Translations under genes and position numbers: made by a program
DNA from: Podarcis bocagei
Lineage: Eukaryota
NCBI GenBank assembly: GCA_964188305.1
Contig: OZ076889.1
Reading direction: 5' to 3' (one strand)
DNA: 64,000 bases
The notes under the pieces: model-generated
Told to the model about the DNA's origin: nothing
The model's input: the letters and a program-made list of their open reading frames with translations, nothing else
The model's database searches: none
Shown: piece by piece, positions 2,489 to 61,084 of the stretch
Numbering within the stretch: the first letter of the stretch is position 1
Layout of the letters: the number at the start of each line of letters is the position of its first letter

Positions 2489-5400
2489 ACACAGTGATGA
2501 GTCCTTTGAAGATGAGTGCTTGGATGGTTGACAGTTCACCAAAGGGATTTGTGGATGAGATAATTATTTGCGAAAGTGATGTATGATCTTAGCTAGAAAC
2601 CAGGTGATTTCAAAGTTCTTCCAGGTTTAGGAATTTATGGCTTACATTTGATAAGGAAAACTGAGTTGCAATGAGAAGGAGAACAACGAAGGCACAGAAT
2701 CTTGGTGCAAGCCATAAATTAAAGAAAGCTTAATTTTAATAGGGAGTAAATTTATTCAGAGGTGTTACCAAAAAGAATCAATCATAGTGTGGGAAAAGAT
2801 AAGAAATGAAAGTGTTTTATATTAGGGAAACACAAGGAACTAAAACTGTTTTGTTTTTGTTTTTTTTTTTGTGGAGGAGAGCTTTTCCTTTTCCTTTTTT
2901 TTTTGTCCCAATCCTCATGAATTATTTTCACTCAGGAGTGGAAACCTCACCATAGCAAGTCTGGTACATATGAGCCTTTGACTCGTCATTCCAGAAAGCC
3001 CCTGTCTACCTCTTCTTTTAAAATGTGAAGTGACTTTTCTTATATTGTTTTAGAATGCCTTAATAATACATTTTCCTATAGTAGTCTTGTTGCAATTTTT
3101 TTCATTTATCAATGCAAACTTTTAAATATAATTTACTGTTTTATCACTTCTATATCATCTACTGATTAATTAAAAAAAAATGAATATTTGCAACTTTTCA
3201 CCATTTGTCACTTCTTTTAAGTACATTTTAAATTTACTTTCCTCTTGGTGTGTTTCACTATACTCATGCTCACTAGAGCAAATTTATATAGACTAGTTTA
3301 GAGCCTGTTTTTCACTCAGCTGTTCAGTTATCTGTCTTAACCATGGAACAAAAAATGGAAACAAATTAAATGCAAATGGAACAAATTAAAATGGAAACAA
3401 ATTAAATTCTTAGAGAATCAGGCTGCAATTCTATATACACTTACCTTGGAAAACATCTCATTGAACTCCCATGCTTACTTACTCCCATGCTTTCGGGGGG
3501 GGTGTGGGTGGGTGTGTGTACCATGGGTACCAGCACCGAATGGCTGCAATGGGCATCAACAACAAAAAAGTGACAGTACTTTGTACTAGTAACAACTGTC
3601 AGAGAAAAAGCACTGCTTACTCCTAAGTAGATGTGCACAGGGTTGCACTGTCAATGTAACACAGCCCTTTTATTCGAGCAGATGCAATGCTGTAAATTAT
3701 CAGGGTAGATTAAAGTTAAGTCTCAGTAGTATTTCAGTATTGGAGAGTATGTTATGTACATTGCAGCCATGAACAAATTGATACAAGATGTTAATCAGAA
3801 GATTATATTAGCATTTCTCTACTTAGCAGCCGTATTGAGTACAGCCTTGCTCAGCTGCACAAAGCTGGCAAAACAGGCAAATACCCCATTCCTCTCATTC
3901 ATTTACAAGCTAGTAGATACCTAAAGCTGAATTGCTTAGAAAATCACTGAGGTATGCTATCGTAGGGTCAATGAATTTGTTACATTTGGGAAGTGTCCAT
4001 CTTAAAATGTAGAATGCAGAAGAGGCAAACACATGTTTGGAATGGAAACACACATTATCTGCAGACTCTGACATCAGAGAGCCAGATCTGACTTGAGCTC
4101 TGTCTCAAGTATACTCACGGTGGCAAACTTGGGTTTTCTGCTTTGCAACGTGTGCAACAGCCTTAACAATCTTGTGATCAATGTATATTTTCTGCCATCC
4201 CATTCAAGTGGGATATAAATTTAATAATGAAATAAACCACTGTTGCAAGTTTTGTTTTTGTTTTTCTTAAATGTGATGAATGTTTGAATTTGGTATCTAC
4301 TAAAATAGGAAATGATGGGGCACTGAATGTTACTTAATATAGGGCTAATCAACCTCTGCCAAACTCCCAACTCTGTTGCCAACTGCCCTCCCTTTGCAAC
4401 AGGCCAAACTCCCTCCCCCTCCCTTTACTGACCCCTCCCCCAAACCCCTTCCCCTCACAGTTCACTCATTCCCCAGGCTTCCTTCTCTCAGTCAAAGGGG
4501 GGGGGACGACAAAGGAAAGAAAGTCATCCTTCCCCCTCCAGCCACAGCAGCAGCAACAACCACAGGAGAAGTGTGGGAAGGCCAGGCCTTGCTTGTGAAT
4601 GTAAACTTGGTTTTTAGCATGATGGCGGACAAGTGCTGATATAGTAAAGAGTGGCATACCTACATATTAAAATATTTATATCCCTCCTTTCAGTCCCCAG
4701 AGAGACCCTGAGGTAAAGACTTCTCAGAAGTTGGTGCCCAGTATAAAAGGCATGCTTGTAGGTTGAACATTGGATATATTGTGTGAACTCACAGCAGAAT
4801 GGCAACAGTAGTTGGACACTGTAACAGTAGTAATCAAAAATAGTAAAAACAGAGGGGCTACAACACATAAAATCCAAAAAAAAAAAAATGTAGTTATTTA
4901 CATTTAATATTCAGTTCTATTTATGCAGCTGAATAAAGAGCATCTTGGAATGAGCATAATATAGGCTTGGATGATTTGTCAAGTTAACAAGAGCAAACAC
5001 AAGCATCAAATAATTACTTTCCCAATCAGAATTTTAGACCATCTTAAGTCAAAATTAGGCAAAGAGGAAATCAACATAATATTAGAGGAAATCAATGTAA
5101 AGTGAAGAACTTGCTGGGTGTGCTTGAAGAATCAGTGATCAGGCTTTTAGAACAAACTTCCTTCTTACATTTCTCTGCAAGTCCCCTTAGCAGTCCTGCA
5201 TGGTGGAGTTCCTATTAACTCTAGTGAATGGTAATAAATGTCAAGATGTAGTTATGAATGCTGGATAATTGATTTGTTGTTTTAATTTGAACTCTGTTGA
5301 GTTGGTTAAGTTTTTTGCCTAGCCACAGGACCTGGCCTATTCACATTGCCTACCCAATTCACCTGCACTAAGTCCACACTAAGAAAAGATGAAAGGAAAG

Positions 5401-8250: not shown

Positions 8251-8619
8251 GGCTATTGGCTGATGTTGGTGGCTCAAAATGGAATTCCTTCATTCCAAAA
8301 GTTGACACCTTTCTGTTTGCAGTTTGGTGGTCTTCTTTGAGTGGGAGAGGATTCATCATTCGTGAACCAATAATCCGGAGTTTTCACTGAGTTAATCTGC
8401 AGCGGGGTTTGTTTTCTTTTCATCTACCTGTGAATCGGGTTTACTCTGCATTCTTCATGAATCCAAACCTTGCTTTTTATGAATCTACTTTACTGCTCTT
8501 TCAAAGCTCAATTCGACAGGAACTGGGATGATTTCTTGTTTACGGAGCAGGTATTTTATAGTGGACCTCCAGGAAGAACTTAAAAAAAAAAAAAGCTGCC
8601 AAATTTAATTCTTCCAGAT

Positions 8620-9670
8620 AATTCCAGCGCGAAACTAGATAATCGCCCCCAAACAGATGACTCAAGGGGGCTTGAAACGTTCGCCTTCCTTTGCGCGGAG
8701 TGGCCCGGCGCAGCTGTGGGAGGTTCCTCGCGGGGCGCTCCGCCCGCCCTCCTCCAATCAGAAGTCGAGCAGGCCTCCCGAGGCGCTCGCCTGCATTTCC
8801 ATTCATCTCCCGCAGGAGACAGGAGCCGCGCACGTGCCGGCGAGTCCCTCTCGAGAGCCCAGCAAAGGCGGACGAGCGCGAGGGCGGGAAAAAGCTCGCG
8901 GGCGGCCTGGGCGAGCGACGTCTTTCCCGGGAGTCGCTCCGCGCCCCCTCAGGGGACTTTCCCGCCCAGTGTCTCTTGGGCTAAGCGCGGCGAGTCTGTG
9001 CAGCTCCCGCGCCTTTTTTTTATGGCGCTAGGACCCAGGCGAGTCTGTCTCTCGTGAGTCAGTTGCCGCAACAGCAGCGGCGGCTCGGTCGGAGTTGAGC
9101 GAGAGCGCCGTGGATGAGGCTGCGGCGCGCGCGCGAAGTGAATGGCTCGCGTGCGTTGGGAAAGTGGCCACGGAGCGAGGCGCTCGAGGATCCCGTGCGT
9201 GAGCCTGCGCGACGGCGCCTATAGCGGCGGCAGCAGCAGCAGCGGCAGCAGCAGCTCCTAGGGGGGCTTCTCTCCACCTGCCCGCGGTCGCAGCGCTGAG
9301 GTGAGTCGCCAGCCCGCCTTGGGCCAATGGACGCAGCAGGCGCGTGAGGAGAAGTTACTGCTGGGCTGCCCGGGCGCGGAGCGGCCGGCCGCAGGGGACG
9401 CGAGCCAACTCCCAAGCCCGCAGGCTGCGGTCCCGGGGCTGTCACTGGAAATGGCACCTTGGGAGGCAGGTCCCTCGTGGGGTTGGACCAAGCAAGCCCA
9501 GCAGCCTCTGGGATGAGCGAAGATTAGCGGCGCGTCTTTCTCTGGGGAGCAGCAGCCCCGACCGAAAGTCGTGGCTTAAAGGGCGCAGGGGTCCCTCATC
9601 AAATAAATAAATCCATAAACGGCGTGAGTGTAGCCCGTTTTCGCCTAGTTCCGCGTATGGTCGCACAGGG
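8620..9670 (+). promoter_or_regulatory. NGF: CpG island, probable NGF promoter
   Basis: ~1 kb that is GC- and CpG-dense in an otherwise CpG-depleted window and lacks TE termini. Contains AP-1 TGACTCA (8658-8664) and TGAGTCA (9055-9061), CCAAT (~8755), a canonical kB site GGGACTTTCC (8953-8962) and GC boxes. It lies ~51 kb upstream of the coding exon, similar to the mammalian NGF layout. Confidence 0.8.
9050..9300 (+). other. NGF: Probable non-coding first exon of NGF (5' end approximate)
   Basis: Strong splice donor GCTGAG|GTGAGT at 9300/9301 inside the CpG island; no transcript evidence available. Confidence 0.55.
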
Positions 9671-12664
9671 GGGGGGGGGATGCCTATGGCGTTCTGGTGT
9701 AAATCAGGGCACAGGCTGTGGTTCTCTCGCGCTGTTTTTACACTTTTTGAAGCCCCCAGACACGTACAGGGTTGAGTTCCCCTCCAGCTACAAACTCCCT
9801 GCTGGGACAGGATGGAAACTGACGGTGCTCATTGATTTATGGTTTGTGATTAAGCTTTTTCCCTCACCCCTGAAAGCGAATGCCAGGCAGAAGGGGAAAG
9901 AGGCGAGCAGATGAGCGGGAGAGGGTTGTTTTGTTTTTGTAGCTCCTTGGGACAGTTTGTGGATCTGTTTCTTCCACCCCTTAACTTTTGAGCATTGCCT
10001 TGTCCAGTGGGAAACCTGCAGGAAATAAATGGATATATGAATAGTGTGCTTGTCCAGCTGGTTTTCCCCCAAATTGTCACAAGCTTGGAAATTTGTGAGC
10101 AACGAAGTGTATTACTGTAAATCCTTTGTATAAACTAGGTGTGGGTTTTCTCTTGTACAGCATAACATAGCATTGTACCTTAGCTTAACTGAAAACATGC
10201 ATCAGAACTTTGTTGTTACGCTGTAGGAAGATATTCTGTCTAGAACTCCTCATGTTAGCTTTACTTTCTCTTACCTGGTTCCAGTGATGCTCTCATTGTT
10301 TGAGCGACATTCCATCATTAAATAATTCCATGGCACTGTACTGCTATAAAATGAGAAACGTCATTATGGTCCATGAAATTGTATTATTGGGGGTGGGGGG
10401 GAGTCAGGCATTCGCCTACAGGACAAAAAAAGATAATAAGGACCAACGGCCAAATGGGTTAGATGAGTCATATATTGAGCCAAAGATGATCAGGACCTTA
10501 ACATCAAGTATCTGAATCATTGCTTAACAATCTCTGAAACATCTGGAGACATTGTTCAGTGATACAGTCACTTTCAAAGGAGTATGTGGAATTGGGATAA
10601 CGATAATTCAGCAACTTGAGAAATGCAGAGAACTCACCCTTAAGGGACAAGATCTGTTTCACAAGATGCTAGGAGAGGAAGTCATGAAGTTTCTGTTGCT
10701 CATTACTCTCTCCTAGTATTAGGTAAGCACAACTTTGCTCAGAAGCAACCTTGCTCTTCTTCTTTTAGTTGTTCTCTGTTTTCTCATTTTAAAAATGGGC
10801 AGAAAGCTAAAGAGTTGTGAAATTGTGTCTGTTCAACTTGCTTCAAAGTGTCAAAGTTTCAATTCAAGAAAACTAACTTGTTTCTGAATGGAAAGTGCTT
10901 ATCCTTTACAGTACAACATACAAAGATAAATTCAGCTGGTATATTATGAAGTCTGAAGTTGTGCTGGTGAGATAGATCCCACTTGTTGATGCAGATTTGT
11001 TTTGCTTATGTACACATTAAAATTCTGTGTCACTTGCATGTATTTCAAAGGGGGGAAAGTCTGTTTCAAGACTCACATACAGATCACTGTAGTTTGTTTT
11101 CTAAGCATCAGTTTAAAGAAGAGGTGTATTTATTATTTGTACTAAACAATTTAATTCTGCTTGTATTGTGGTTGTGTTCAACTGTTGAAAATGAAACTGT
11201 TTCATTTTTGCTTAAACACCATAAAGTGTAACATGCATGGAAATACAGTAGTACAAAATTCAGTTCTGTCACATAATGTCAGTCCAGGCCAGGCTGATGG
11301 AGCTCTCCCAGACCATCCATTACAGTTTTTGAAAATGTCACTGTTTATCATGGCCATTTAAAGCAATGGTGACCTCTGCTGGCAATTCCCATCTAAAAAA
11401 TATGTGCTGAATTCAGCCATCTGATAAACATGAATTGTTCCTGATTGATTTAATAACATGCATTAAAGTAGGTTGGCTAATAAAACCATGAAGTTCACTT
11501 ACACAGTTGTAATGACATTAATGGAGTTTGCTTCTAAGTAAGCGTACATAGGATAAAGTTGTTTTAAAAATCCTTATTCTACCACCTCTCCACATGTGTT
11601 CTTCAGTTTTGTACTGTTTTGTGAGCTAGATTACACATATAGATTCCATTTTTTTGGTTTACGTTGCTTGCCAGAAACCCTGTCTGTTTTTGAGGTGAAG
11701 GAGTAGTTTTAATAATATAACAAAATTTCAGGGGGAAGACTGTTCCACATGAATATCTGGCATTTCAGATGGAAATAGTTTACTTTGTTATTGGTTAAAC
11801 ATTAAGCAATCCATGGTCTGGAATTAATTCACCTATAGAAGCAGGGGGGAGATTCTCTGCCTTTTTTTGTTTTTTTCTTTCTCTTGGCCTTTGTATGATT
11901 ACCAGAAGACAAAAAAGATAGATATACAGTTGAGTTACAGGTAGATGAGAGAGAACTTACTCGTGCGTACACATGCAGCTGTCTTGGAATTAATGGTGCT
12001 TGCCTAATTTAACCCTGCGTTGGTCTTCTAGCATTAACATTAGTGGAAATAGTAGACCACCCATAAGACTGTAAATGATAGCAAAAACTTTGTAGTAAAG
12101 AACATGAGAATGCAGAGGTCTTTATATAAAACAACAACTGCAATACGCACACACATCTATACATCAAAATTAGTTTTTGTCTACCAAGGCAATAATTCAA
12201 TGTTGGCTCAGAATCTTGAGATCTGGACTTGATAATAGCTACTGTGCTTGGAAAATCAGCTTCTGGATAACAGAAAATAGCTAAATGGTGCTGTTTTAAA
12301 TATTGAAAGCACTCAGAGAGTTTGTTCAAATGGCAGATTCCCCAATACTGAAGTGTTAAACTAGAAGTGGATGATAAAAATGTAGAGAGGTGTAAATGAA
12401 TGTAAAAGTACATAAGGAAAGATTTTATCTGCTTTATCTTGTTAAGTCAGTTGCTTTATCTTGTTAAGTCAGCAAAGAGATCAAAATGCAGCCCCTTTGA
12501 GACAAAGGGGGAAATCAAAATAACAACAACACAAATATCAGTAAATCCCATGGCAATCTCTAAAACATGCTATCCTGTATAAGTCAGTTCAAAATTAATT
12601 CCCATTGAGTTTCCAGGTCAGAGTGAATAAGACTGCAGCCTAAAAAAGTAAAAAGGCAGTAGCA

Positions 12665-25525: not shown

Positions 25526-26104
25526 TATAACAGTGCAAGGATTACATGTAGTGCTGGCCCAAGACATTTTGCTGCCTGAAGTGAAGCAAAAATCTCCTTA
25601 ATCCTACTAGGGCCAAACACTTTAGTATCACAGCAGGGCAGGGCAGGCAGGACCAGTGCTGGTTTTTGTTTGTTTCAGAATTTATCAGAATTCAGAAAAT
25701 ATCTGAATATAAAACATAGATAATAAAATAGTATTAAAACACATAAATCAACAAAAATTAAAAACTATCTAATTTGAGAAGGCTCCTGAGAAAAGAAAAG
25801 TTTTCAATGGATATTGAAAACACTAACAAATATTGGGGTTGCTTCACTTTTGAAGAAAGGGAATTACAGAGAGCAGGTGCCACAGTGCTAAAGTCACTTC
25901 ATGCCTTACTGCAAAGGTGTATGTCACCATCAACAGATGCTCCTCCACAAATGTAAATGACTGGGGCAGTTTCTCAGATTCTGTTGTTCAGAATTGCATA
26001 GGGCTTTATGCATCGGTAGTATAACCTTGAACCTAGCTTAGTAGCAGATTGGCAGCCAGTGCATCACTATCAACAGAAGTGTCACATGTTCCTGATAAGA
26101 TATA

Positions 26105-27646
26105 CCGTATTTTGCGCCCCATAAGACGCTCCGGCCCATAAGACGCACCTAGTTTTTTGGGGGGGAAATAAAGGGAAAAAATTATTTCCCCCCCAGGCGC
26201 GGGGCTGGGGCAGCCCGAGCTTCCCCCGACCCCAGCCCCCAAACAGGCAGCTCTCTGCAAGCCGTGGGAGCCCAGCGGTGGTTCCCGCTGCTTGAGGAGA
26301 GATCCGCGAAGCCTGCACGTGCTGGGATCAGCGCTTGCAGGCTTCGGGATGCCTGCAACTCTCCCCAAGCAGTGGGAACGTTCCCGCTGCTTGGGGAGAG
26401 ATCCGCGAAGCCTGCGCGTGCTGGGATCAGCGCGCGCAGGCTTCGGGATGCCTGCAACTCTCCCCAAGCAGTGGGAACGTTCCCGCTGCTTGGGGAGAGA
26501 TCCGCGAAGCCTGCGCGTGCTGGGATCAGCGCGCGCAGGCTTCGGGATGCCTGCAACTCTCCCCAAGCAGTGGGAACGTTCCCGCTGCTTGGGGAGAGAT
26601 CCGCGAAGCCTGCGCGTGCTGGGATCAGCGCGCGCAGGCTTCGGGATGCCGGCAACTCTCCCCAAGCAGTGGGAACGTTCCCGCTGCTTGGGGAGAGATC
26701 CGCGAAGCCTGCGCGTGCTGGGATCAGCGCGCGCAGGCTTCGGGATGCCTGCAACTCTCCCCAAGCAGTGGGAACGTTCCCGCTGCTTGGGGAGAGATCC
26801 GCGAAGCCTGCGCGTGCTGGGATCAGCGCGCGCAGGCTTCGGGATGCCGGCAACTCTCCCCAAGCAGTGGGAACGTTCCCGCTGCTTGGGGAGAGATCCG
26901 CGAAGCCTGCGCGTGCTGGGATCAGCGCTTGCAGGCTTCAGGATGCCTGCAACTCTCCCCAAGCAGTGGGAACGTTCCCGCTGCTTGGGGAGAGATCCGC
27001 GAAGCCTGCACGTGCTGGGATCAGCGCTTGCAGGCTTCGGGATGCCTGCAACTCTCCCCAAGCAGTGGGAACGTTCCCGCTGCTTGGGGAGAGATCCGCG
27101 AAGCCTGCACGTGCTGGGATCAGCGCTTGCAGGCTTCGGGATGCCTGCAACTCTCCCCAAGCAGTGGGAACGTTCCCGCTGCTTGGGGAGAGATCCGCGA
27201 AGCCTGCACGTGCTGGGATCAGCGCTTGCAGGCTTCGGGATGCCTGCAACTCTCCCCAAGCAGTGGGAACGTTCCCGCTGCTTGGGGGGAGATCCGCGAA
27301 GCCTGCACGTGCTGGGATCAGCGCTTGCAGGCTTCGGGATGCCGGCAACTCTCCCCAAGCAGTGGGAACGTTCCCGCTGCTTGGGGAGAAGTCCGCGAAG
27401 CCTGCACGTGCTGGGATCAGCGCTTGCAGGCTTCGGGATGCCGGCAACTCTCCCCAAGCAGTGGGAACGTTCCCGCTGCTTGAGGAGAGGTCCGCGAAGC
27501 CTGGAGAGCGAGAGGGGTCGGTGCGCACCTACCGCTCTCGCTCTCCAGGCTTCAGCGAAAGCCTGCATTCGCCCCATAAGACGCACCCACATTTCCCCTT
27601 CATTTTTGGAGGGGAAAAAGTGCGTCTTATAGGGCGAAAAATACGG
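26105..27646. mobile_element. Tc2/pogo-like non-autonomous DNA transposon carrying a tandem hairpin array
   Basis: TIRs ccgtattttgcgccccataagacgc / gcgtcttatagggcgaaaaatacgg flanked by TA; internal ataagacgcac sub-terminal repeats. Confidence 0.92.
26281..27503. repeat. Minisatellite: 12 full 99-bp palindromic units plus a partial 13th
   Basis: Units start at 26281, 26380, 26479 ... 27370, 27469. Unit: gttcccgctgcttggggagagatccgcgaagcctgcacgtgctgggatcagcgcttgcaggcttcgggatgcctgcaactctccccaagcagtgggaac. Confidence 0.97.
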
Positions 27647-27650
27647 TATA

Positions 27651-27981
27651 TTAGCCATGTTCAAATATATAAAAGGATGTCACATAGAGGAGGGAGAAAG
27701 GTTGTTTTCGGCTGCTCCAGAGAAGCGGACACGGAGCAATGGATTCAAACTACAAGAAAGAAGATTCCACCTAAACATTAGGAAGAACTTCCTGACAGTA
27801 AGAGCTGTTCGACAGTGGAATTTGCTGCCAAGGAGTGTGGTGGAGTCTCCTTCTTTGGAGGTCTTTAAGCAGAGGCTTGACAACCATATGTCAGGAGTGC
27901 TCTGATGGTGTTTCCTGCTTGGCAGGGGGTTGGACTCGATGGCCCTTGTGGTCTCTTCCAACTCCTATGATTCTATGATTC
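27651..27981 (+). mobile_element. Young 5'-truncated CR1 LINE
   Basis: ORF 27657-27905 (FKYIKG...RTRSNGFKLQERRFHLNIRKNFLTVRAVRQWNLLPRSVVESPSLEVFKQRLD) is the CR1 ORF2 C-terminus; ends in an (ATTCTATG)n tail. Confidence 0.92.
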
Positions 27982-28049
27982 TAAGATGCCCCAGAGAGTG
28001 ACCATGCAGCAGTATTTTGTCCTATCTGCAGCTTCCCAATCAAATGCAA

Positions 28050-33653: not shown

Positions 33654-35061
33654 CAGGGGTGTCAAACTCAAATTCATCGGGGGCCACATCAACAGTTTGG
33701 TCCCCCTCAAAGGGCCGGTTGTATCTGTAGGACTTTATCAGAGTTATTTTTCCTTAGGCACTGGTGTGTGTTGTCTTGAACCTATACACTATTTAATATA
33801 CCTATTCCAGTACGATTTTAAATAAGAATAGAAGAAGAAATAATAATGATTTTTTAAAAAGATGACGAGATGGGCTTCCAGGCAGACTGGAGCTCCAACG
33901 GGAAGGAGACAGGAGCCTGTCCCAACAGAGCAGAGCAGAAGCAAATGTTGCCTCCCCCCGCCCTGCCGCCGCACTCAGGAGTCGGAGGATACGGAGCTGC
34001 AGTTTGGGTAGCAGCAGTTTCTTCCTTGCAAGGGAGCCCCAGCGGCACCGCGAGCGCAGGTGGCCAGGATGTCCTGCTGGGGCCCCGAGCTGCTGCAGTT
34101 GCTCCCGGGGAGGGGGCTATCTGCCAAGTCCTCCGGCCCAGAGAAAGCCGATGTGTTGGCGTGGGGAGGGGGGCGGTGTTTCGTAGCCAGGCTCCCGCAG
34201 CCAAGTTGCTGGCAGGCTCCCACTTTGCTCCAGCTGCCCAGATGCTGGCGCGGTCCTCTTCGGGGTGGGAGGCGCCCCTGCTTTGCGGTGTGGCACACCG
34301 CCCGCCCGCCTCCCTCCACCCCACTCTGCGCAGCTGAACTGGCAGCAGCTTCGCCTCTTCCAGCCCAGCAGGGGCGCGCCGCCTGTGGCAAGACCTGCGC
34401 TGGGTCCCCGCTCTCCACTCGCCTCCGCCGTTCCCTTCCCCGCCTGCCGGCCCCGCTACTTATCCACCAGGGCGACCCCCAGCCAGCCCCTGGCCCCGCC
34501 GTCCGCGCCCCCAGCCATCTCCTCGCCAGCTGCAGTGCCGCAGTGGCCTCTTCTTGCGGCCCGAGCGAGTGAGCGAGCGGCGTCCCAAGCGTGGCTCTCG
34601 CTCCCTGCCCTCGCGGCTCCCTCGCGCTCCAAAAGTTGCCGCGCGCGCAACCCGCCCCCTCAAGCAGCCGTGCCTGGGAGGCTTCGAGGGGCGGAGGCAG
34701 CCGGCTCCGAGCTCAGCTTCGCGGGACCGCCTCCGCCGCAGCGAGCCCCGGACTGGACCGAGCGAGCAGAAAGCCTCTTTGCCCGGCCCGCGAGGCAGGC
34801 GAAAGTTGTGGGACTGGCCGGTAGGCAGCGCCGACGGGGCGCTTCGGTTGGAGCCCTGTCTGCAAGCAGGCAGGGAAGGCTGTTTGCGTGGGTCACTTTT
34901 TAGAAAGGCAGAGAGCCTCCGCCGGAGTGCGGACCCTAAAATCTGGGTCGGGACCAGTAAAAAGGATGAGAAGCTCGCTTCCTCGCCCTTGATGCCACGG
35001 GCCACATGACGAGGTCTGGCGGGCCGGATTTGGCCCGCGGGCCTTGTGTTTGACACCCGTG
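33654..35061. mobile_element. Non-autonomous hAT element (1.4 kb) with CpG-island-like interior
   Basis: TIRs caggggtgtcaaac / gtttgacacccgtg; sub-terminal gggccg boxes; perfect 8-bp TSD TTATAGAT (33646-33653, 35062-35069). Confidence 0.92.
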
Positions 35062-35130
35062 TTATAGATGGTAGGGTCTAGAATCAGTATAGATTGAAAG
35101 TAGTACGTTGAGAACAAACCATAGTCTGTC

Positions 35131-36455
35131 AAACCAGTTGCACTGACTCCAATCATCATGAAGTGTTTTGAGAAACTGGTGCGCCGTCACATTATTTCCT
35201 GTCTTCCATCAACTTTTGACAACTACCAGTTTGCATACAGAGCAAATAGATCCACAGAAGACGCCATCAATACCACTCTCCATGCTGCTCTGTCCCATCT
35301 GGAGCAGCCGGGGAGTTATGTGAGGCTGCTGTTTGTGGATTTTAGCTCTGCTTTTAACACTATCCTCCCCCATAGACTGGTGTCCAAGCTAGAGGCGATT
35401 GGACTCTCCAACTCCACCTGTCTCTGGGTTTTGGATTTTTTGTCAGAACGTTCTCAGAGGGTTAGAGTAGGGTCACACATGTCCACAGCCCTTAGCCTTA
35501 ACACCGGCTCACCACAGGGTTGTGTGTTGAGTCCCCTGCTCTACACTCTCTATACGTATGACTGTACAGCCTTCTATTCCAGCAACAAAATCATCAAGTT
35601 TGCTGATGACACTACGGTGGTGGGGCTCATTTCAGGAGGGGATGAGTCCGCCTATCGGGACGAGGTGGAGCGGCTCTGTGTTTGGTGTGGAGAGAACAAT
35701 CTGGCTCTTAATACGGCTAAGACCAAGGAATTGGTGGTGGATTACAGGGGAAAAAAGGCGGACATTCAGCCCTTGTATATCAACGGGGAACGGGTGGAGA
35801 GGGTGGCGGAATTCAGGTTTTTGGGAGTAGCTATCGATCAGGGCATGACTTGGAGCGCACATACCACTGCTCTGGTGAAGAAGGCCCAGCAGAGAATTTA
35901 TTTCCTCAGACTTTTAAAGAAGAACAATCTGAGTGAGAGACTGCTGGTGTGCTTCTACCGAGGCTCCATAGAGAGCATTCTTACATACTGTATTTGTGCT
36001 TGGTTCTCCGGTTGTACAGCTAGGAAGAGGAAGGTGCTCCAGAAGGTCATAACCACAGCCCAAAGGATTATTGGTCATCCTCTCCCATCTTTGGAAGAAC
36101 TGTACGGTTCCCGTTGTCTTAGGAAGGCAAATAACATCCTGCAGGATTCATCTCACCCGGGACACGGTCTGTTTGCACTACTGCCTTCTGGCAGGAGATA
36201 TAGAAACATCAAGTCAAAGACAAATAGACTGAAAAACAGTTTCTATCCAAGAGCTGTGGCCTTTTTGAATGCTGTAACTCGATAGTGTGACCTGGGAGTT
36301 TGATGGGTGTGGTGTGGGTGTGGCTGGAATGTGGTTTGTTTGGTTGTTGTTGTTGTTTTGCTTTTGATGTTTTAAGGGATGGCATCCAATTTCGTTGCAC
36401 TTTGTACAATGTTGCACTTGTGTAATGACAATAAAGAATCTATTCTATTCTATTC
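35131..36455 (+). mobile_element. 5'-truncated Rex1/Babar non-LTR retrotransposon
   Basis: Begins at KPVALTPII-MKCFE; short 3' UTR, AATAAA (36430-36435) and (TCTAT)n tail. Confidence 0.88.
35158..36285 (+). CDS. Reverse transcriptase ORF (375 aa) of the Rex1/Babar element, endonuclease absent
   Basis: QFAYRANRSTEDAI, LFVDFSSAFNTI, GSPQGCVLSPLLY, KFADDTT, FRFLGV, KKAQQRIYFLR, HPGH.LF.LLPSGRRY, RLKNSFYPRA; no stops. Confidence 0.85.
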   Translation: MKCFEKLVRRHIISCLPSTFDNYQFAYRANRSTEDAINTTLHAALSHLEQPGSYVRLLFVDFSSAFNTILPHRLVSKLEAIGLSNSTCLWVLDFLSERSQRVRVGSHMSTALSLNTGSPQGCVLSPLLYTLYTYDCTAFYSSNKIIKFADDTTVVGLISGGDESAYRDEVERLCVWCGENNLALNTAKTKELVVDYRGKKADIQPLYINGERVERVAEFRFLGVAIDQGMTWSAHTTALVKKAQQRIYFLRLLKKNNLSERLLVCFYRGSIESILTYCICAWFSGCTARKRKVLQKVITTAQRIIGHPLPSLEELYGSRCLRKANNILQDSSHPGHGLFALLPSGRRYRNIKSKTNRLKNSFYPRAVAFLNAVTR

Positions 36456-56441: not shown

Positions 56442-59400
56442 TTGTAAATCCCTTTGGGTATGAGAAGAAAGATAACCCAAAAACTGACCCACAATGCATC
56501 ATAAAAGAGACAACCAATGGAAAGGGAGATGGCTGTTATCAAGTCATAAGATCTAATGTGAAGTTTATTGGCAGAATTGAAATTATTACTTGAAGCTGTT
56601 TAAGAATGAGGGGGGGATATTTGTTGCTTGTAAACTGTGGCAAGACTATAGAGAAAAGGGGGGAAGCACTCAGAGAATAGGACTTTTCTAACTGCTAGTG
56701 GTGCAAGAGCTGAAGGGAGAAGATTCAGCTGCCAGACTTTCAGATTTGCTTCTCAGACACAGTCTTCTCCATCAGTTGTTTCTAGAATGTCTCCTGTGTG
56801 TTTTAATTATTTTCTGCTGTAGCTTGGCTTAGCCTCTTGAACTTTGTGTACATTTCACTAGTTGCTGATTCTGACCTAATTGTAGTGTGGATTGTGTTAA
56901 GTTGATGGTTTTTAAAGTCCCTTTTTAACAAAGGTATCTCAGTGTGTGGAGAGTTGGACAGACCAGCTATTTATCTTATTGTTGTTTTGCTGATTGAATA
57001 CATTTAAATGAGCTTTCAGAGATAGATAGATATAGATATATAAAACACAAGCTTAATGTGCATTTATAGATAAGCAATATTCAAATACTAAAGACTAACA
57101 GACTGACCCTATGCATGTTTATGTGGAAATAGGTCTTGATATATTCAGTGGGGCTTCTGAGTAAACAGAAATAGGATCTGGGTGCAATTTGCAGCGAGCT
57201 TTCAAGCTGGTACCTTATAACAATTTCAGTCTTTCTCAATGAAACGTTCTTTCTTTTAATAATTTTGTGTTTAAGATCTAAGGGGGAAAGAGCTTTGCTA
57301 TTGGTATGAGGAAACTGATTACTATTTCATCAACAATTCAAAACTTTACTATTGGGAAAGGAAAGCCCTGCGTTTTACTAGAACAGCTCTAGCAGTATGG
57401 AGAGTTCAGTAAGTTTATACTTCAATATTCTGTATAGCGACATGTTAAAGGCTTTTTGTGGGGAGGGGGATGCACATTGAAATATGCTCTTGCGTTTATT
57501 CATCTCAAATAAATACTTTCCCCTATTCCATATTCACAATTATTTTTTCTTAACAGAATTCCCAGTTTACCCATTAAGGATATATTATAGAAATGGTATA
57601 CAGGGTCAACACCACTCTGGTTTTGAGTGCAACAGAGTCATTAAATTAGAAGCAGGGGTGTGTAGAAGTCATTAAATGATTTTTAATCATTTGATCAATT
57701 TTGAAATAATTAAAAGAGTATCAAACAAGATAGCGAGACCGTTTCAGTGAATTGTGTGTCCTTGAATTTTATAAAAGGGAGGATACATGAGTCCACCAAT
57801 TTCAAGCTAATTATTCTTTCCAAGGATCTTTTAAAGGCTTTTGGTATTTAAGCTGATTTTTGCCATGGAAAAGTGATAAAGGGGAGGGGAGGATGCAAAA
57901 AACAGGATTCCAGTTGTGGCAAAGCACCACTGGGAGGGGACCAAGGTTTTCCTCGGAAATGGGTGGAGAGAGACAAAACTTGTTCTTCTGCTTGTTCTTC
58001 AGACAACAAAATGCTTTGGGACAGCCATGATTACAATGCAATACATGCAATTAGTTAATTACAGCAATGGAAGCTTATCCAGTTGGCATTACCATATGCC
58101 AGACTATATTTTCTCCCTGTTGATAAAACTGAAATTTTTCATGCTGAAGCCATTGTGAAATCCTACTTGATAAAACTTACAATGAGATATGCTTGCAAGC
58201 TATGCCTGCCATTGGCATTATTGCTCTCCTTGAAGATAGATGCATCTGTGAACAGCATGCTCTGTGAATATTAATAAAACTTCTTACCAAGAAACAATAG
58301 TGCTATAGGGCCTATGAATGGAAGAACAGAAATGACCTTTGATGTGGTCCCCATACTGAAGTGTACTCATTGCAGATGATGCACAGAACTGTGCCAGCTT
58401 GAAACTCCATGTGACAATCATACCTGACCTGTGTCCTTGCTTTTTAATTCTTCCTCTTTCCTCTCAGTGGCGTAGCGTGGGGGGTGCAGGGGGGGCCGAC
58501 CGCACCAGGCGCAACATCTGGGGGTTAGGGTTAGGGTGCGCAAATAAAAAGACCCAAAGGAAGGGAGATAAATCCTTTCTTGAATGTTGCTACAGTTCAA
58601 AGCAGCAAATCTGCCCATGTATTTAACCCCAAACAGCATTTTATGGCTATCCCTAACCTCCTTTTTCCTATTCAGAAGGGAGTTACATACCAAGGTATTG
58701 TATTTAAACAACAAAGGTGGAGATGCTACTATGTGCTAGAGTCTGGATTTTGTTGTGCAAACCTTTTTTCATTAGCATCCCTATTGAAATCAGAAAACTC
58801 GTTTGAGCTGTCCTGACACATCTGACTTTAATTTGAATTGTTCATGAAATGGGGCCTGCGTATTCCTGCATTATATGGCTGGTGTGCTTCATTTGCCCTT
58901 GCCCAAGAAGCATCTGTCACTTCCTGCCACACAGCACAGGGCTTCACTCTGGGTCTAAACATGATTTGAGGTGTGCCAGAGAGCTCTGGCTAATGAGTGC
59001 CCTTTGTCTAGGAGGGCTTTGCAACTGATGCCTAGTATCAGAGTCTGAACCATTTCCTTATGAGAGCTTGAGACATTTGTCCACTCAGTATACTCAGCCA
59101 AAACACGACAAAAAGAAGGGGAAATCAATCTTGACAACACTTACTCAGTTTACATTTGTTACATGCGTTTCAACTCCCTGAAATCAATGCCCTTAAGCAG
59201 CCTAAATTGTGGGTTGACTTGTTTATTACTCTTTTCTCTGGCTTTCGACATTTGAGGTGTATATTTTTAGGACCCTCCATTCTTTTGTGACTGCAGGTTG
59301 TTCCAAACAGTTTTTAATATTGTGTTTTCATGTTGTAACCTGCCCTGGGAATTTAAAGCGAAGTGTTGGTAATAAATTAATAATAACATCATAATATATT

Positions 59401-59875: not shown

Positions 59876-60352
59876 TAGCCATGTTTGCTATCTTTGTGGC
59901 TCATTCCAATCTAGGAGAAGAAAATAATTCTTGTGAGATAGATAAATATCTTTCTCCAAAGGTTCCCATGTAACCAGTGGAGAGTCTTGCCAGGAGCAGC
60001 ACTTCGCATTAAAGCCCCCAAACAATGGCTCTATAAGTCATCTCCTAATAACAAAAACCACAGGAATTAACAATAACCCAGTTATGATTTCCTAGTGTTC
60101 CCACTTTATGAAGCACATCACTGCTATGTGAGTTAGTCTTTCTGAAAGGAGTGGGGGGGGGAGCCACATCTGGCATCCACATGCAAGGCCTTCGCGAAGA
60201 AGATGAAATATTTTAACAGTGCACTTTCACTGGGACTGCCTTATCAGCACATATCTATTGACTAGGCTTGAAATGGAACCTTTTGCATGTCGCCCTTTTT
60301 TTTTTGCTCACAGTAATGTTCCTGGTCTGTTCTCTCCTAGGTGCATAGCGTA

Positions 60353-61084
60353 ATGTCCATGCTGTGCTACACTCTGATTATAGCATTTCTGATCGGCATA
60401 CGGGCAGCACCAAAAACTGAAGATAATGCACCACTGGGGTCTCCTGCAACATCTGGCATTTCTGAAAGCAGACGGACTAAAACACACCACATTATGAAAA
60501 CGTCTCAGCACAGAGACCACAGCCAGCCTGTTACTGGGAAGGTAGTGAACAGGAAATCCGGGCAAGCTGCAAGCATCATAGTGGATCCAAAGCTTTTTCA
60601 GAAGAGGAGGTTCCAGTCACCTCGGGTTTTGTTCAGCACTCAGCCTCCACCTTTGTCAAGGGATGGGCTGAGTGTGGAGTTCCTAGACAGCACAGACTCT
60701 ACGAACAGGACGATCCGAGCCAAGCGCGCAGCTCACCCTGTGCACAACCGAGGAGAGTACTCTGTGTGTGACAGTGTTAGTGTGTGGGTTGCCAACAAAA
60801 CCACAGCGACAGACATTAAAGGCAAAGAGGTGACTGTGGTGGTGGACGTAAACTATAACAACTACCCTTACAAACAGTACTTTTTCGAGACCAAGTGCAG
60901 AGACCCTAAGCCGGTGTCCAGTGGGTGCAGAGGCATTGATGCCAGGCATTGGAATTCCTACTGCACCACCACACACACCTTTGTCAAGGCACTGACAATG
61001 GATGGCAAGCAGGCAGCTTGGCGCTTCATTCGGATTGACACTGCCTGCGTATGCGTAATCAGTAGGAAAACGGAGAACCTCTGA
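60353..61084 (+). CDS. NGF: Prepro-beta-nerve growth factor (243 aa; mature NGF starts at 60728 after the RAKR furin site)
   Basis: Signal peptide [18 protein letters not shown]; pro-domain motifs [19 protein letters not shown] and NRTIRAKR; mature cystine-knot domain [19 protein letters not shown]...KQYFFETKC...[23 protein letters not shown]...[15 protein letters not shown]. Preceded by a polypyrimidine acceptor (tctctcctag|GTGCATAGCGTAATG, exon start 60341), the conserved VHSV-M junction of vertebrate NGF. Confidence 0.98.

Follow-up and report, generated by a model that had tools for sequence, protein, structure and literature searches.

A palindromic minisatellite, probably grown in place, within a TA-flanked mini-transposon upstream of the NGF coding exons of Podarcis bocagei

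The window analyzed here is a stretch of 64,000 nucleotides of contig OZ076889.1 (assembly GCA_964188305.1) of the lizard Podarcis bocagei. Demonstrable exons of the NGF gene lie at 57.3–61.1 kb. An open reading frame at 60353–61084 encodes a protein with 242 of 243 residues identical to NGF of Podarcis muralis, the one difference from the P. muralis UniProt sequence being F for L in the pro-region. The main coding exon (60341–61084) is preceded by a polypyrimidine tract and an AG. Four additional N-terminal residues present in P. muralis NGF were found, as MESS, at 57397–57408, followed by GTAAGT, and a small exon (57276–57408) is therefore placed 2.9 kb upstream. Upstream of these coding exons lies an element of about 1.54 kb (core 26105–27646), which harbors a tandem array of a 99-bp unit and whose backbone, the array left aside, amounts to about 320 bp.

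Whether the array is located inside NGF depends on where the gene starts. Two CpG islands are candidate start sites, and only the one at 8.5–9.9 kb puts the array inside the gene. This island (8500–9900) reaches an observed/expected CpG ratio of 1.1 and a GC content of 0.69, and contains an AP-1-type TGAGTCA at 9055–9061 and a donor-like GTGAGT at 9301; judged by its sequence, it is likely to comprise the promoter and first exon of NGF, about 51 kb upstream of the coding exon. The second island (34200–35100, GC up to 0.74) abuts a 5'-truncated LINE ORF, a reverse-transcriptase frame found directly downstream of the island at 35158–36285 (RVT_1, E 6e-24). This second island could be an alternative start site of NGF or part of a repeat. 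If the gene started at the first island, it would span about 52 kb and its first intron, about 48 kb long, would contain the array, dimensions that resemble those of mammalian NGF. If it started only at the second, the array would be found 7 kb upstream of the gene. We consider it likely that the array lies in an NGF intron.

The first-pass annotation had located the array inside intact terminal inverted repeats, and inverted ends were indeed found on both sides, positions 26100–26129 matching the reverse complement of 27622–27651 at 28 of 30 positions. Within these stretches, the left terminal inverted repeat was assigned to 26105–26129 (plus strand) and the right one, by comparison of the ends, to 27622–27646 (minus strand). 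The left repeat contains a 13-nt end motif that occurs four times in the window, always inside the element, against 0.03 occurrences expected by chance. Motif search placed a second, subterminal copy at 26134–26146 (plus strand), and a direct copy at 27572–27584 takes part, together with the right terminal repeat, in a right-end hairpin (27568–27640) recognized by motif search, self-matches and folding. Self-matches and folding also revealed a small A/T–G/C hairpin in the left backbone (26158–26195), with 14-nt arms at 26158–26171 and 26182–26195. A TA dinucleotide adjoins the core on both sides (26103–26104 and 27647–27648), and on reading the sequence the two were taken as a candidate target-site duplication; a second TA is present on the left at 26101–26102, and with only 2 bp beside a palindromic end, exact placement is impossible.

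No coding capacity was found in the element, whose ORFs are translated repeat only. Across the array, each of the six frames stays open only because 99 equals 3 x 33. A coding reading of the array ORFs was rejected, given that their Pfam matches included no stretch that passed independently and that protein word searches with two array reading frames, aimed at assemblies of lizard sequencing runs, returned no relatives; the latter blank is weak, as gene callers may choose a different frame or pass over the repeat. Neither the array ORF nor NGF gave any record in exact look-ups. The best reading of these features is that the element is a non-autonomous, TA-flanked DNA transposon bounded by terminal inverted repeats, that is, a MITE, known here from one copy. 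In superfamily it would be most like the Tc1/mariner–pogo group. The sequence directly to its right (27690–27985) is presumably a repeat of the squamate SINE or LINE-tail type, and the transposon may have inserted into older repeats or beside them.

A single array was reported by Tandem Repeats Finder, at 26281–27503, with a period of 99, 12.4 copies, 98% matches and 0 indels. Repeat finding, folding and unit comparison characterize it as a palindromic minisatellite (12.4 x 99 bp, with no strand assigned), in which the units are arranged head-to-tail and each is a nearly perfect palindrome. Several structural claims of the first-pass annotation were borne out at this level. Each unit had been described as folding back on itself, and folding of the units on both strands produced a single hairpin. 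As predicted for RNA, the hairpin of one unit consists of an outer stem of 21 bp and an inner stem of 24 bp with a 1-nt bulge, separated by a one-sided 8-nt bulge on the 3' side. The outer arms, said to pair at 20 of 21 positions plus a G-U, differ at one position, which is a G.U pair on the plus strand, and the inner arms close a 4-nt GGAT loop, as had been proposed. Predicted RNA energies of the units ranged from -79 to -86 kcal/mol on the plus strand and from -72 to -79 kcal/mol on the minus strand, with z-scores of -10 to -13 and none of 200 shuffles equally stable; DNA parameters gave -52 and -47 kcal/mol. Since the unit is self-complementary, the junction between two units forms a second palindrome, which spans 42 bp as claimed and is self-complementary at 40 of 42 positions. 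The unit itself being a near-perfect 99-nt hairpin, the array is thus palindromic in two registers. The further hairpin that had been noted after the array was located in the backbone at 27496–27553, where it combines the base of the unit's inner stem with a different top (-61 kcal/mol, z -7.9).

Unit-like sequence was also found on both sides of the array. On the left, a decayed copy of the 3' arm of the unit is present at 26246–26268 (plus strand), with 19 of 23 positions matching unit positions 75–97 in local alignment, and on the right the sequence aligns to unit positions 52–87. These remnants in both flanks indicate that the array grew from the backbone of the element itself and was not captured. 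Captured cargo was on this basis disfavored relative to growth in place, the alignments concerned being short. Within the array, nine columns vary, and the 12 units comprise seven distinct sequences. Variant B (G37, G55, C56) makes up units 2–6 and variant A (A37, T55, T56) units 1 and 8–12. Unit 7 is a hybrid that carries G37 together with T55 and T56, its 5' part belonging to variant B and its 3' part to variant A, and a block boundary therefore falls within it. A15 is found in unit 1 and in the last partial unit, G occupying this position in all interior units. As read from the order of the units, the contiguous blocks, the hybrid unit and the older edge variants together present the usual signature of unequal exchange or slippage within the array.

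The units were then compared for signs of selection on their pairing. A double change in the stem was observed at one pair only, 37–56, in the 12 units with their seven distinct sequences. No covariation above shuffles was detected among them: at least the same number of double-change pairs was obtained in 349 of 500 shuffles, and the score was reached in 81 of 500. Covariation preserving the stem was rejected, given that the change represents a single event spread by block duplication, that it is broken to G.U in unit 7, and that it does not stand above shuffles. Positions 37 and 56, where the transitions occurred, belong to mirrored CpG sites, and two ordinary CpG mutations could therefore yield the double change. 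On the plus strand, 27 cells are G.U and 3 are A.C, proportions that are reversed on the minus strand. When only independent single changes were considered, the plus strand showed 5 G.U versus 3 A.C, that is, no bias, as expected without selection. No sign of selection on RNA pairing was seen in the 12 near-identical units, a comparison of little power that amounts to absence of evidence. The pairing is inherited along with the palindrome. Palindromic DNA repeats copy their own pairing, and therefore neither the perfect hairpins nor a single 'compensatory' change is evidence of a functional RNA.

These observations bear on the proposal, made in the first-pass annotation, of a cluster resembling a pri-miRNA or hpRNA. 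In its broadest form, this rival reading holds that the array is a cassette for small RNA or double-stranded RNA, transcribed within the NGF pre-mRNA or from a promoter of its own, and giving rise to Drosha or Dicer products or to ADAR editing. In favor of the proposal, transcription would yield an RNA that is double-stranded over almost its full length. The whole element is predicted to fold at -1279 kcal/mol into helices of 42–46 bp, neighboring junction palindromes pairing into 42-bp helices, and this is the long near-perfect intramolecular duplex looked for in an hpRNA or long double-stranded RNA. According to the fold, such an RNA would possibly suit ADAR and, in principle, Dicer, provided that the region is transcribed. 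The array may plausibly be intronic, other species are known to have miRNAs derived from MITEs, and the NGF-sense strand pairs slightly better (27 G.U versus 3 mismatched cells); this strand bias, however, comes down to two fixed positions copied 12 times and is reduced to 5 versus 3 when events are counted independently, and the covariation stays within the range of the shuffles. The geometry of the hairpins also argues against the proposal. In Drosha substrates, the stem measures about 35 bp, the flanks are single-stranded and the apical loop has at least about 10 nt. The geometry found here is not that of a canonical pri-miRNA, the stem measuring 45–46 bp, the loop 4 nt and the linker between hairpins 0 nt; abutting without a linker and closed by a 4-nt loop, the hairpins therefore offer neither the single-stranded flanks nor the large loop of Drosha substrates. 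Long hairpins, in turn, are inefficiently converted into siRNAs by vertebrate somatic cells. Searches of Rfam at gathering scores returned no family at threshold in the whole window, and an E-value scan of 25–29 kb gave only sub-threshold matches, on both strands and to several unrelated miRNA models. The best of these scored 60 bits where 94 are needed, again on both strands, and the matches were rejected as generic, of the kind that any long perfect hairpin would give. Hairpin geometry, the Rfam scan, covariation and strand counts all failed to support the cluster, and we regard a cassette of this kind as very unlikely.

A different role for the element was considered in view of its composition. 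The array has an observed/expected CpG ratio of 0.82 and the whole element one of 0.81, versus 0.30 for the window, in agreement with the earlier description of the CpGs as largely retained, and the CpG content supports the accompanying claim that the expansion is recent or unmethylated. With a GC content of 0.64, the element qualifies by composition as a CpG island along some 1.5 kb. Another meaning of the high CpG content could be that methylation is kept away from the array, hinting at some activity; the element might then be regarded as a mobile CpG island, in other words a GC-rich block free of methylation that would function near NGF as an alternative promoter, an enhancer or a boundary. 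The composition agrees with such a role but would be shown by any young GC-rich insertion; moreover, three or four of the nine variable columns fall in CpG sites, which suggests, from the pattern of variation, that CpG decay has begun. A mobile CpG island in this sense appears extremely unlikely. We hold as highly improbable the more general idea that hairpin-array MITEs of lacertids, this copy included, are mobile intronic sources of double-stranded RNA that are edited by ADAR or diced, or that travel as unmethylated CpG islands. If it were true, insertion and expansion in a gene such as NGF would add a block of more than 1 kb of 42–46-bp helices to the pre-mRNA, and the length of the array would tune the output of the host gene or the sensing of double-stranded RNA. 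Finally, the length of the array might be an artefact of assembly, the true allele having far fewer or far more units. Short reads have difficulty with near-identical 99-bp repeats that extend over 1.2 kb, and copy number is often polymorphic in minisatellites. The array is nonetheless composed of seven distinct unit sequences in ordered blocks with a hybrid unit, unlike a collapsed or inflated repeat, and the window contains no runs of N (0), making this explanation most improbable.

The preferred reading, to which we assign a probability of about 0.8, is that of a non-coding, TA-flanked cut-and-paste transposon whose own palindromic module expanded in place into a young, probably neutral minisatellite. 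The interior of the element would already have been built of GC-rich palindromic modules when one 99-bp stretch of it doubled and went on to multiply in place until 12 copies were reached, probably through replication slippage or unequal exchange. Formation of hairpins or cruciforms on single-stranded DNA may have favored these events. The hairpins would be a property of the DNA palindrome and not of a selected RNA. The array is probably young, as suggested by its 98% identity and by CpGs that have not yet decayed, and probably neutral for the host, neutrality being judged from the absence of a signal in 12 nearly identical units, a comparison of low power. The interpretation first given to this locus thus holds in part: a transposon-borne, young or unmethylated, cruciform-prone seed of a satellite is retained, the array being a palindromic repeat of the satellite-seeding kind, and the pri-miRNA or hpRNA cassette is not.

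Read as a minisatellite grown in place, the locus is a clean and young case in which a mini-transposon has converted a portion of its own sequence into a minisatellite. This is one stage of the recognized route by which transposons give rise to satellite DNA. The significance of the locus would increase only if processing, editing or a maintained lack of methylation of such arrays inside genes were demonstrated by RNA or methylation data. The locus carries a caution as well, namely that the perfection of hairpins in a palindromic DNA array is no proof of RNA function.

Relatives of the element were sought within the window and in other collections. No second copy was found within the 64-kb window, where short-word blastn of both ends matched only the ends themselves. 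A scan of metagenome contigs for the end pattern returned one match, a contig of 3.8 kb (Ga0209629_10056137) that carries at 3070–3107 a solo transposon end resembling both termini of the lizard element over about 35 nt. The contig looks arthropod-derived, as judged by a weak match to the HTH of Mos1, and no linked transposase of the DDE/pogo type was found on it beside the solo end. The occurrence of a similar end on an arthropod-like contig indicates that this type of end exists outside vertebrates; its likeness to the lizard ends would possibly reflect shared ancestry within an old superfamily or horizontal transfer. Neither the end pattern nor the unit pattern matched any of the viral and prokaryote genome contigs scanned.

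Transposon palindromes that give hairpin RNA once transcribed are represented by MITE-derived miRNA genes, such as the human mir-548 family from MADE1, and by the hpRNA loci of Drosophila, and the lizard element is like them in this respect. It differs in that small RNAs of those loci have been sequenced and their geometry fits Drosha or Dicer-2, whereas the lizard hairpins misfit Drosha and are known from DNA alone.

Parallels are also offered by MITEs with expanding internal tandem repeats that are able to seed satellites, as described for miDNA4 and Xstir of Xenopus, for bivalves and for Drosophila, stem-loop formation being invoked in several of the proposed amplification mechanisms (PMC12628747). 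Among squamates, a survey of DNA transposons in Anolis described non-autonomous Tc1/mariner families with Tc2-related ends (PMC3014272). As far as the work of Scalvenzi and Pollet is summarized in PMC12628747, miDNA4 is a Tc1/mariner MITE with an internal satellite, and the lizard element resembles it in being a short TA-type MITE with terminal inverted repeats, inside which an array of one to many internal repeats expands. For miDNA4, the same summary reports a proposed capture of a pre-existing repeat through AT-rich microhomologies, whereas the lizard unit looks backbone-derived and each unit is a long hairpin. In the apparent origin of its repeats, the element resembles Xstir of Xenopus (Hikosaka and Kawahara 2004) and the MITEs containing tandem repeats of Donax trunculus (Satovic and Plohl 2013, PMC3879986), which, in the account given of them in PMC12628747, derive their repeats from internal MITE sequence and for which stem-loop formation is invoked in amplification. 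These systems, compared here by description, differ from the lizard element in hosts, ends and unit sequences. Tandem repeats within DNA transposons, extensive secondary structure and the potential to seed a satellite are further shared with Tetris of Drosophila virilis and with foldback elements (Dias et al. 2014, PMC4079207, as outlined in PMC12628747). In foldback elements, to the extent that they are outlined there, the tandem repeats build long terminal inverted repeats; in the lizard element, by contrast, the ends measure 25–30 bp, the array is central and the unit is self-complementary. Combined, these comparisons place the element within a known kind of MITE containing tandem repeats, from which it is set apart by one distinctive trait, a repeat unit that is itself a near-perfect hairpin of 99 nt.
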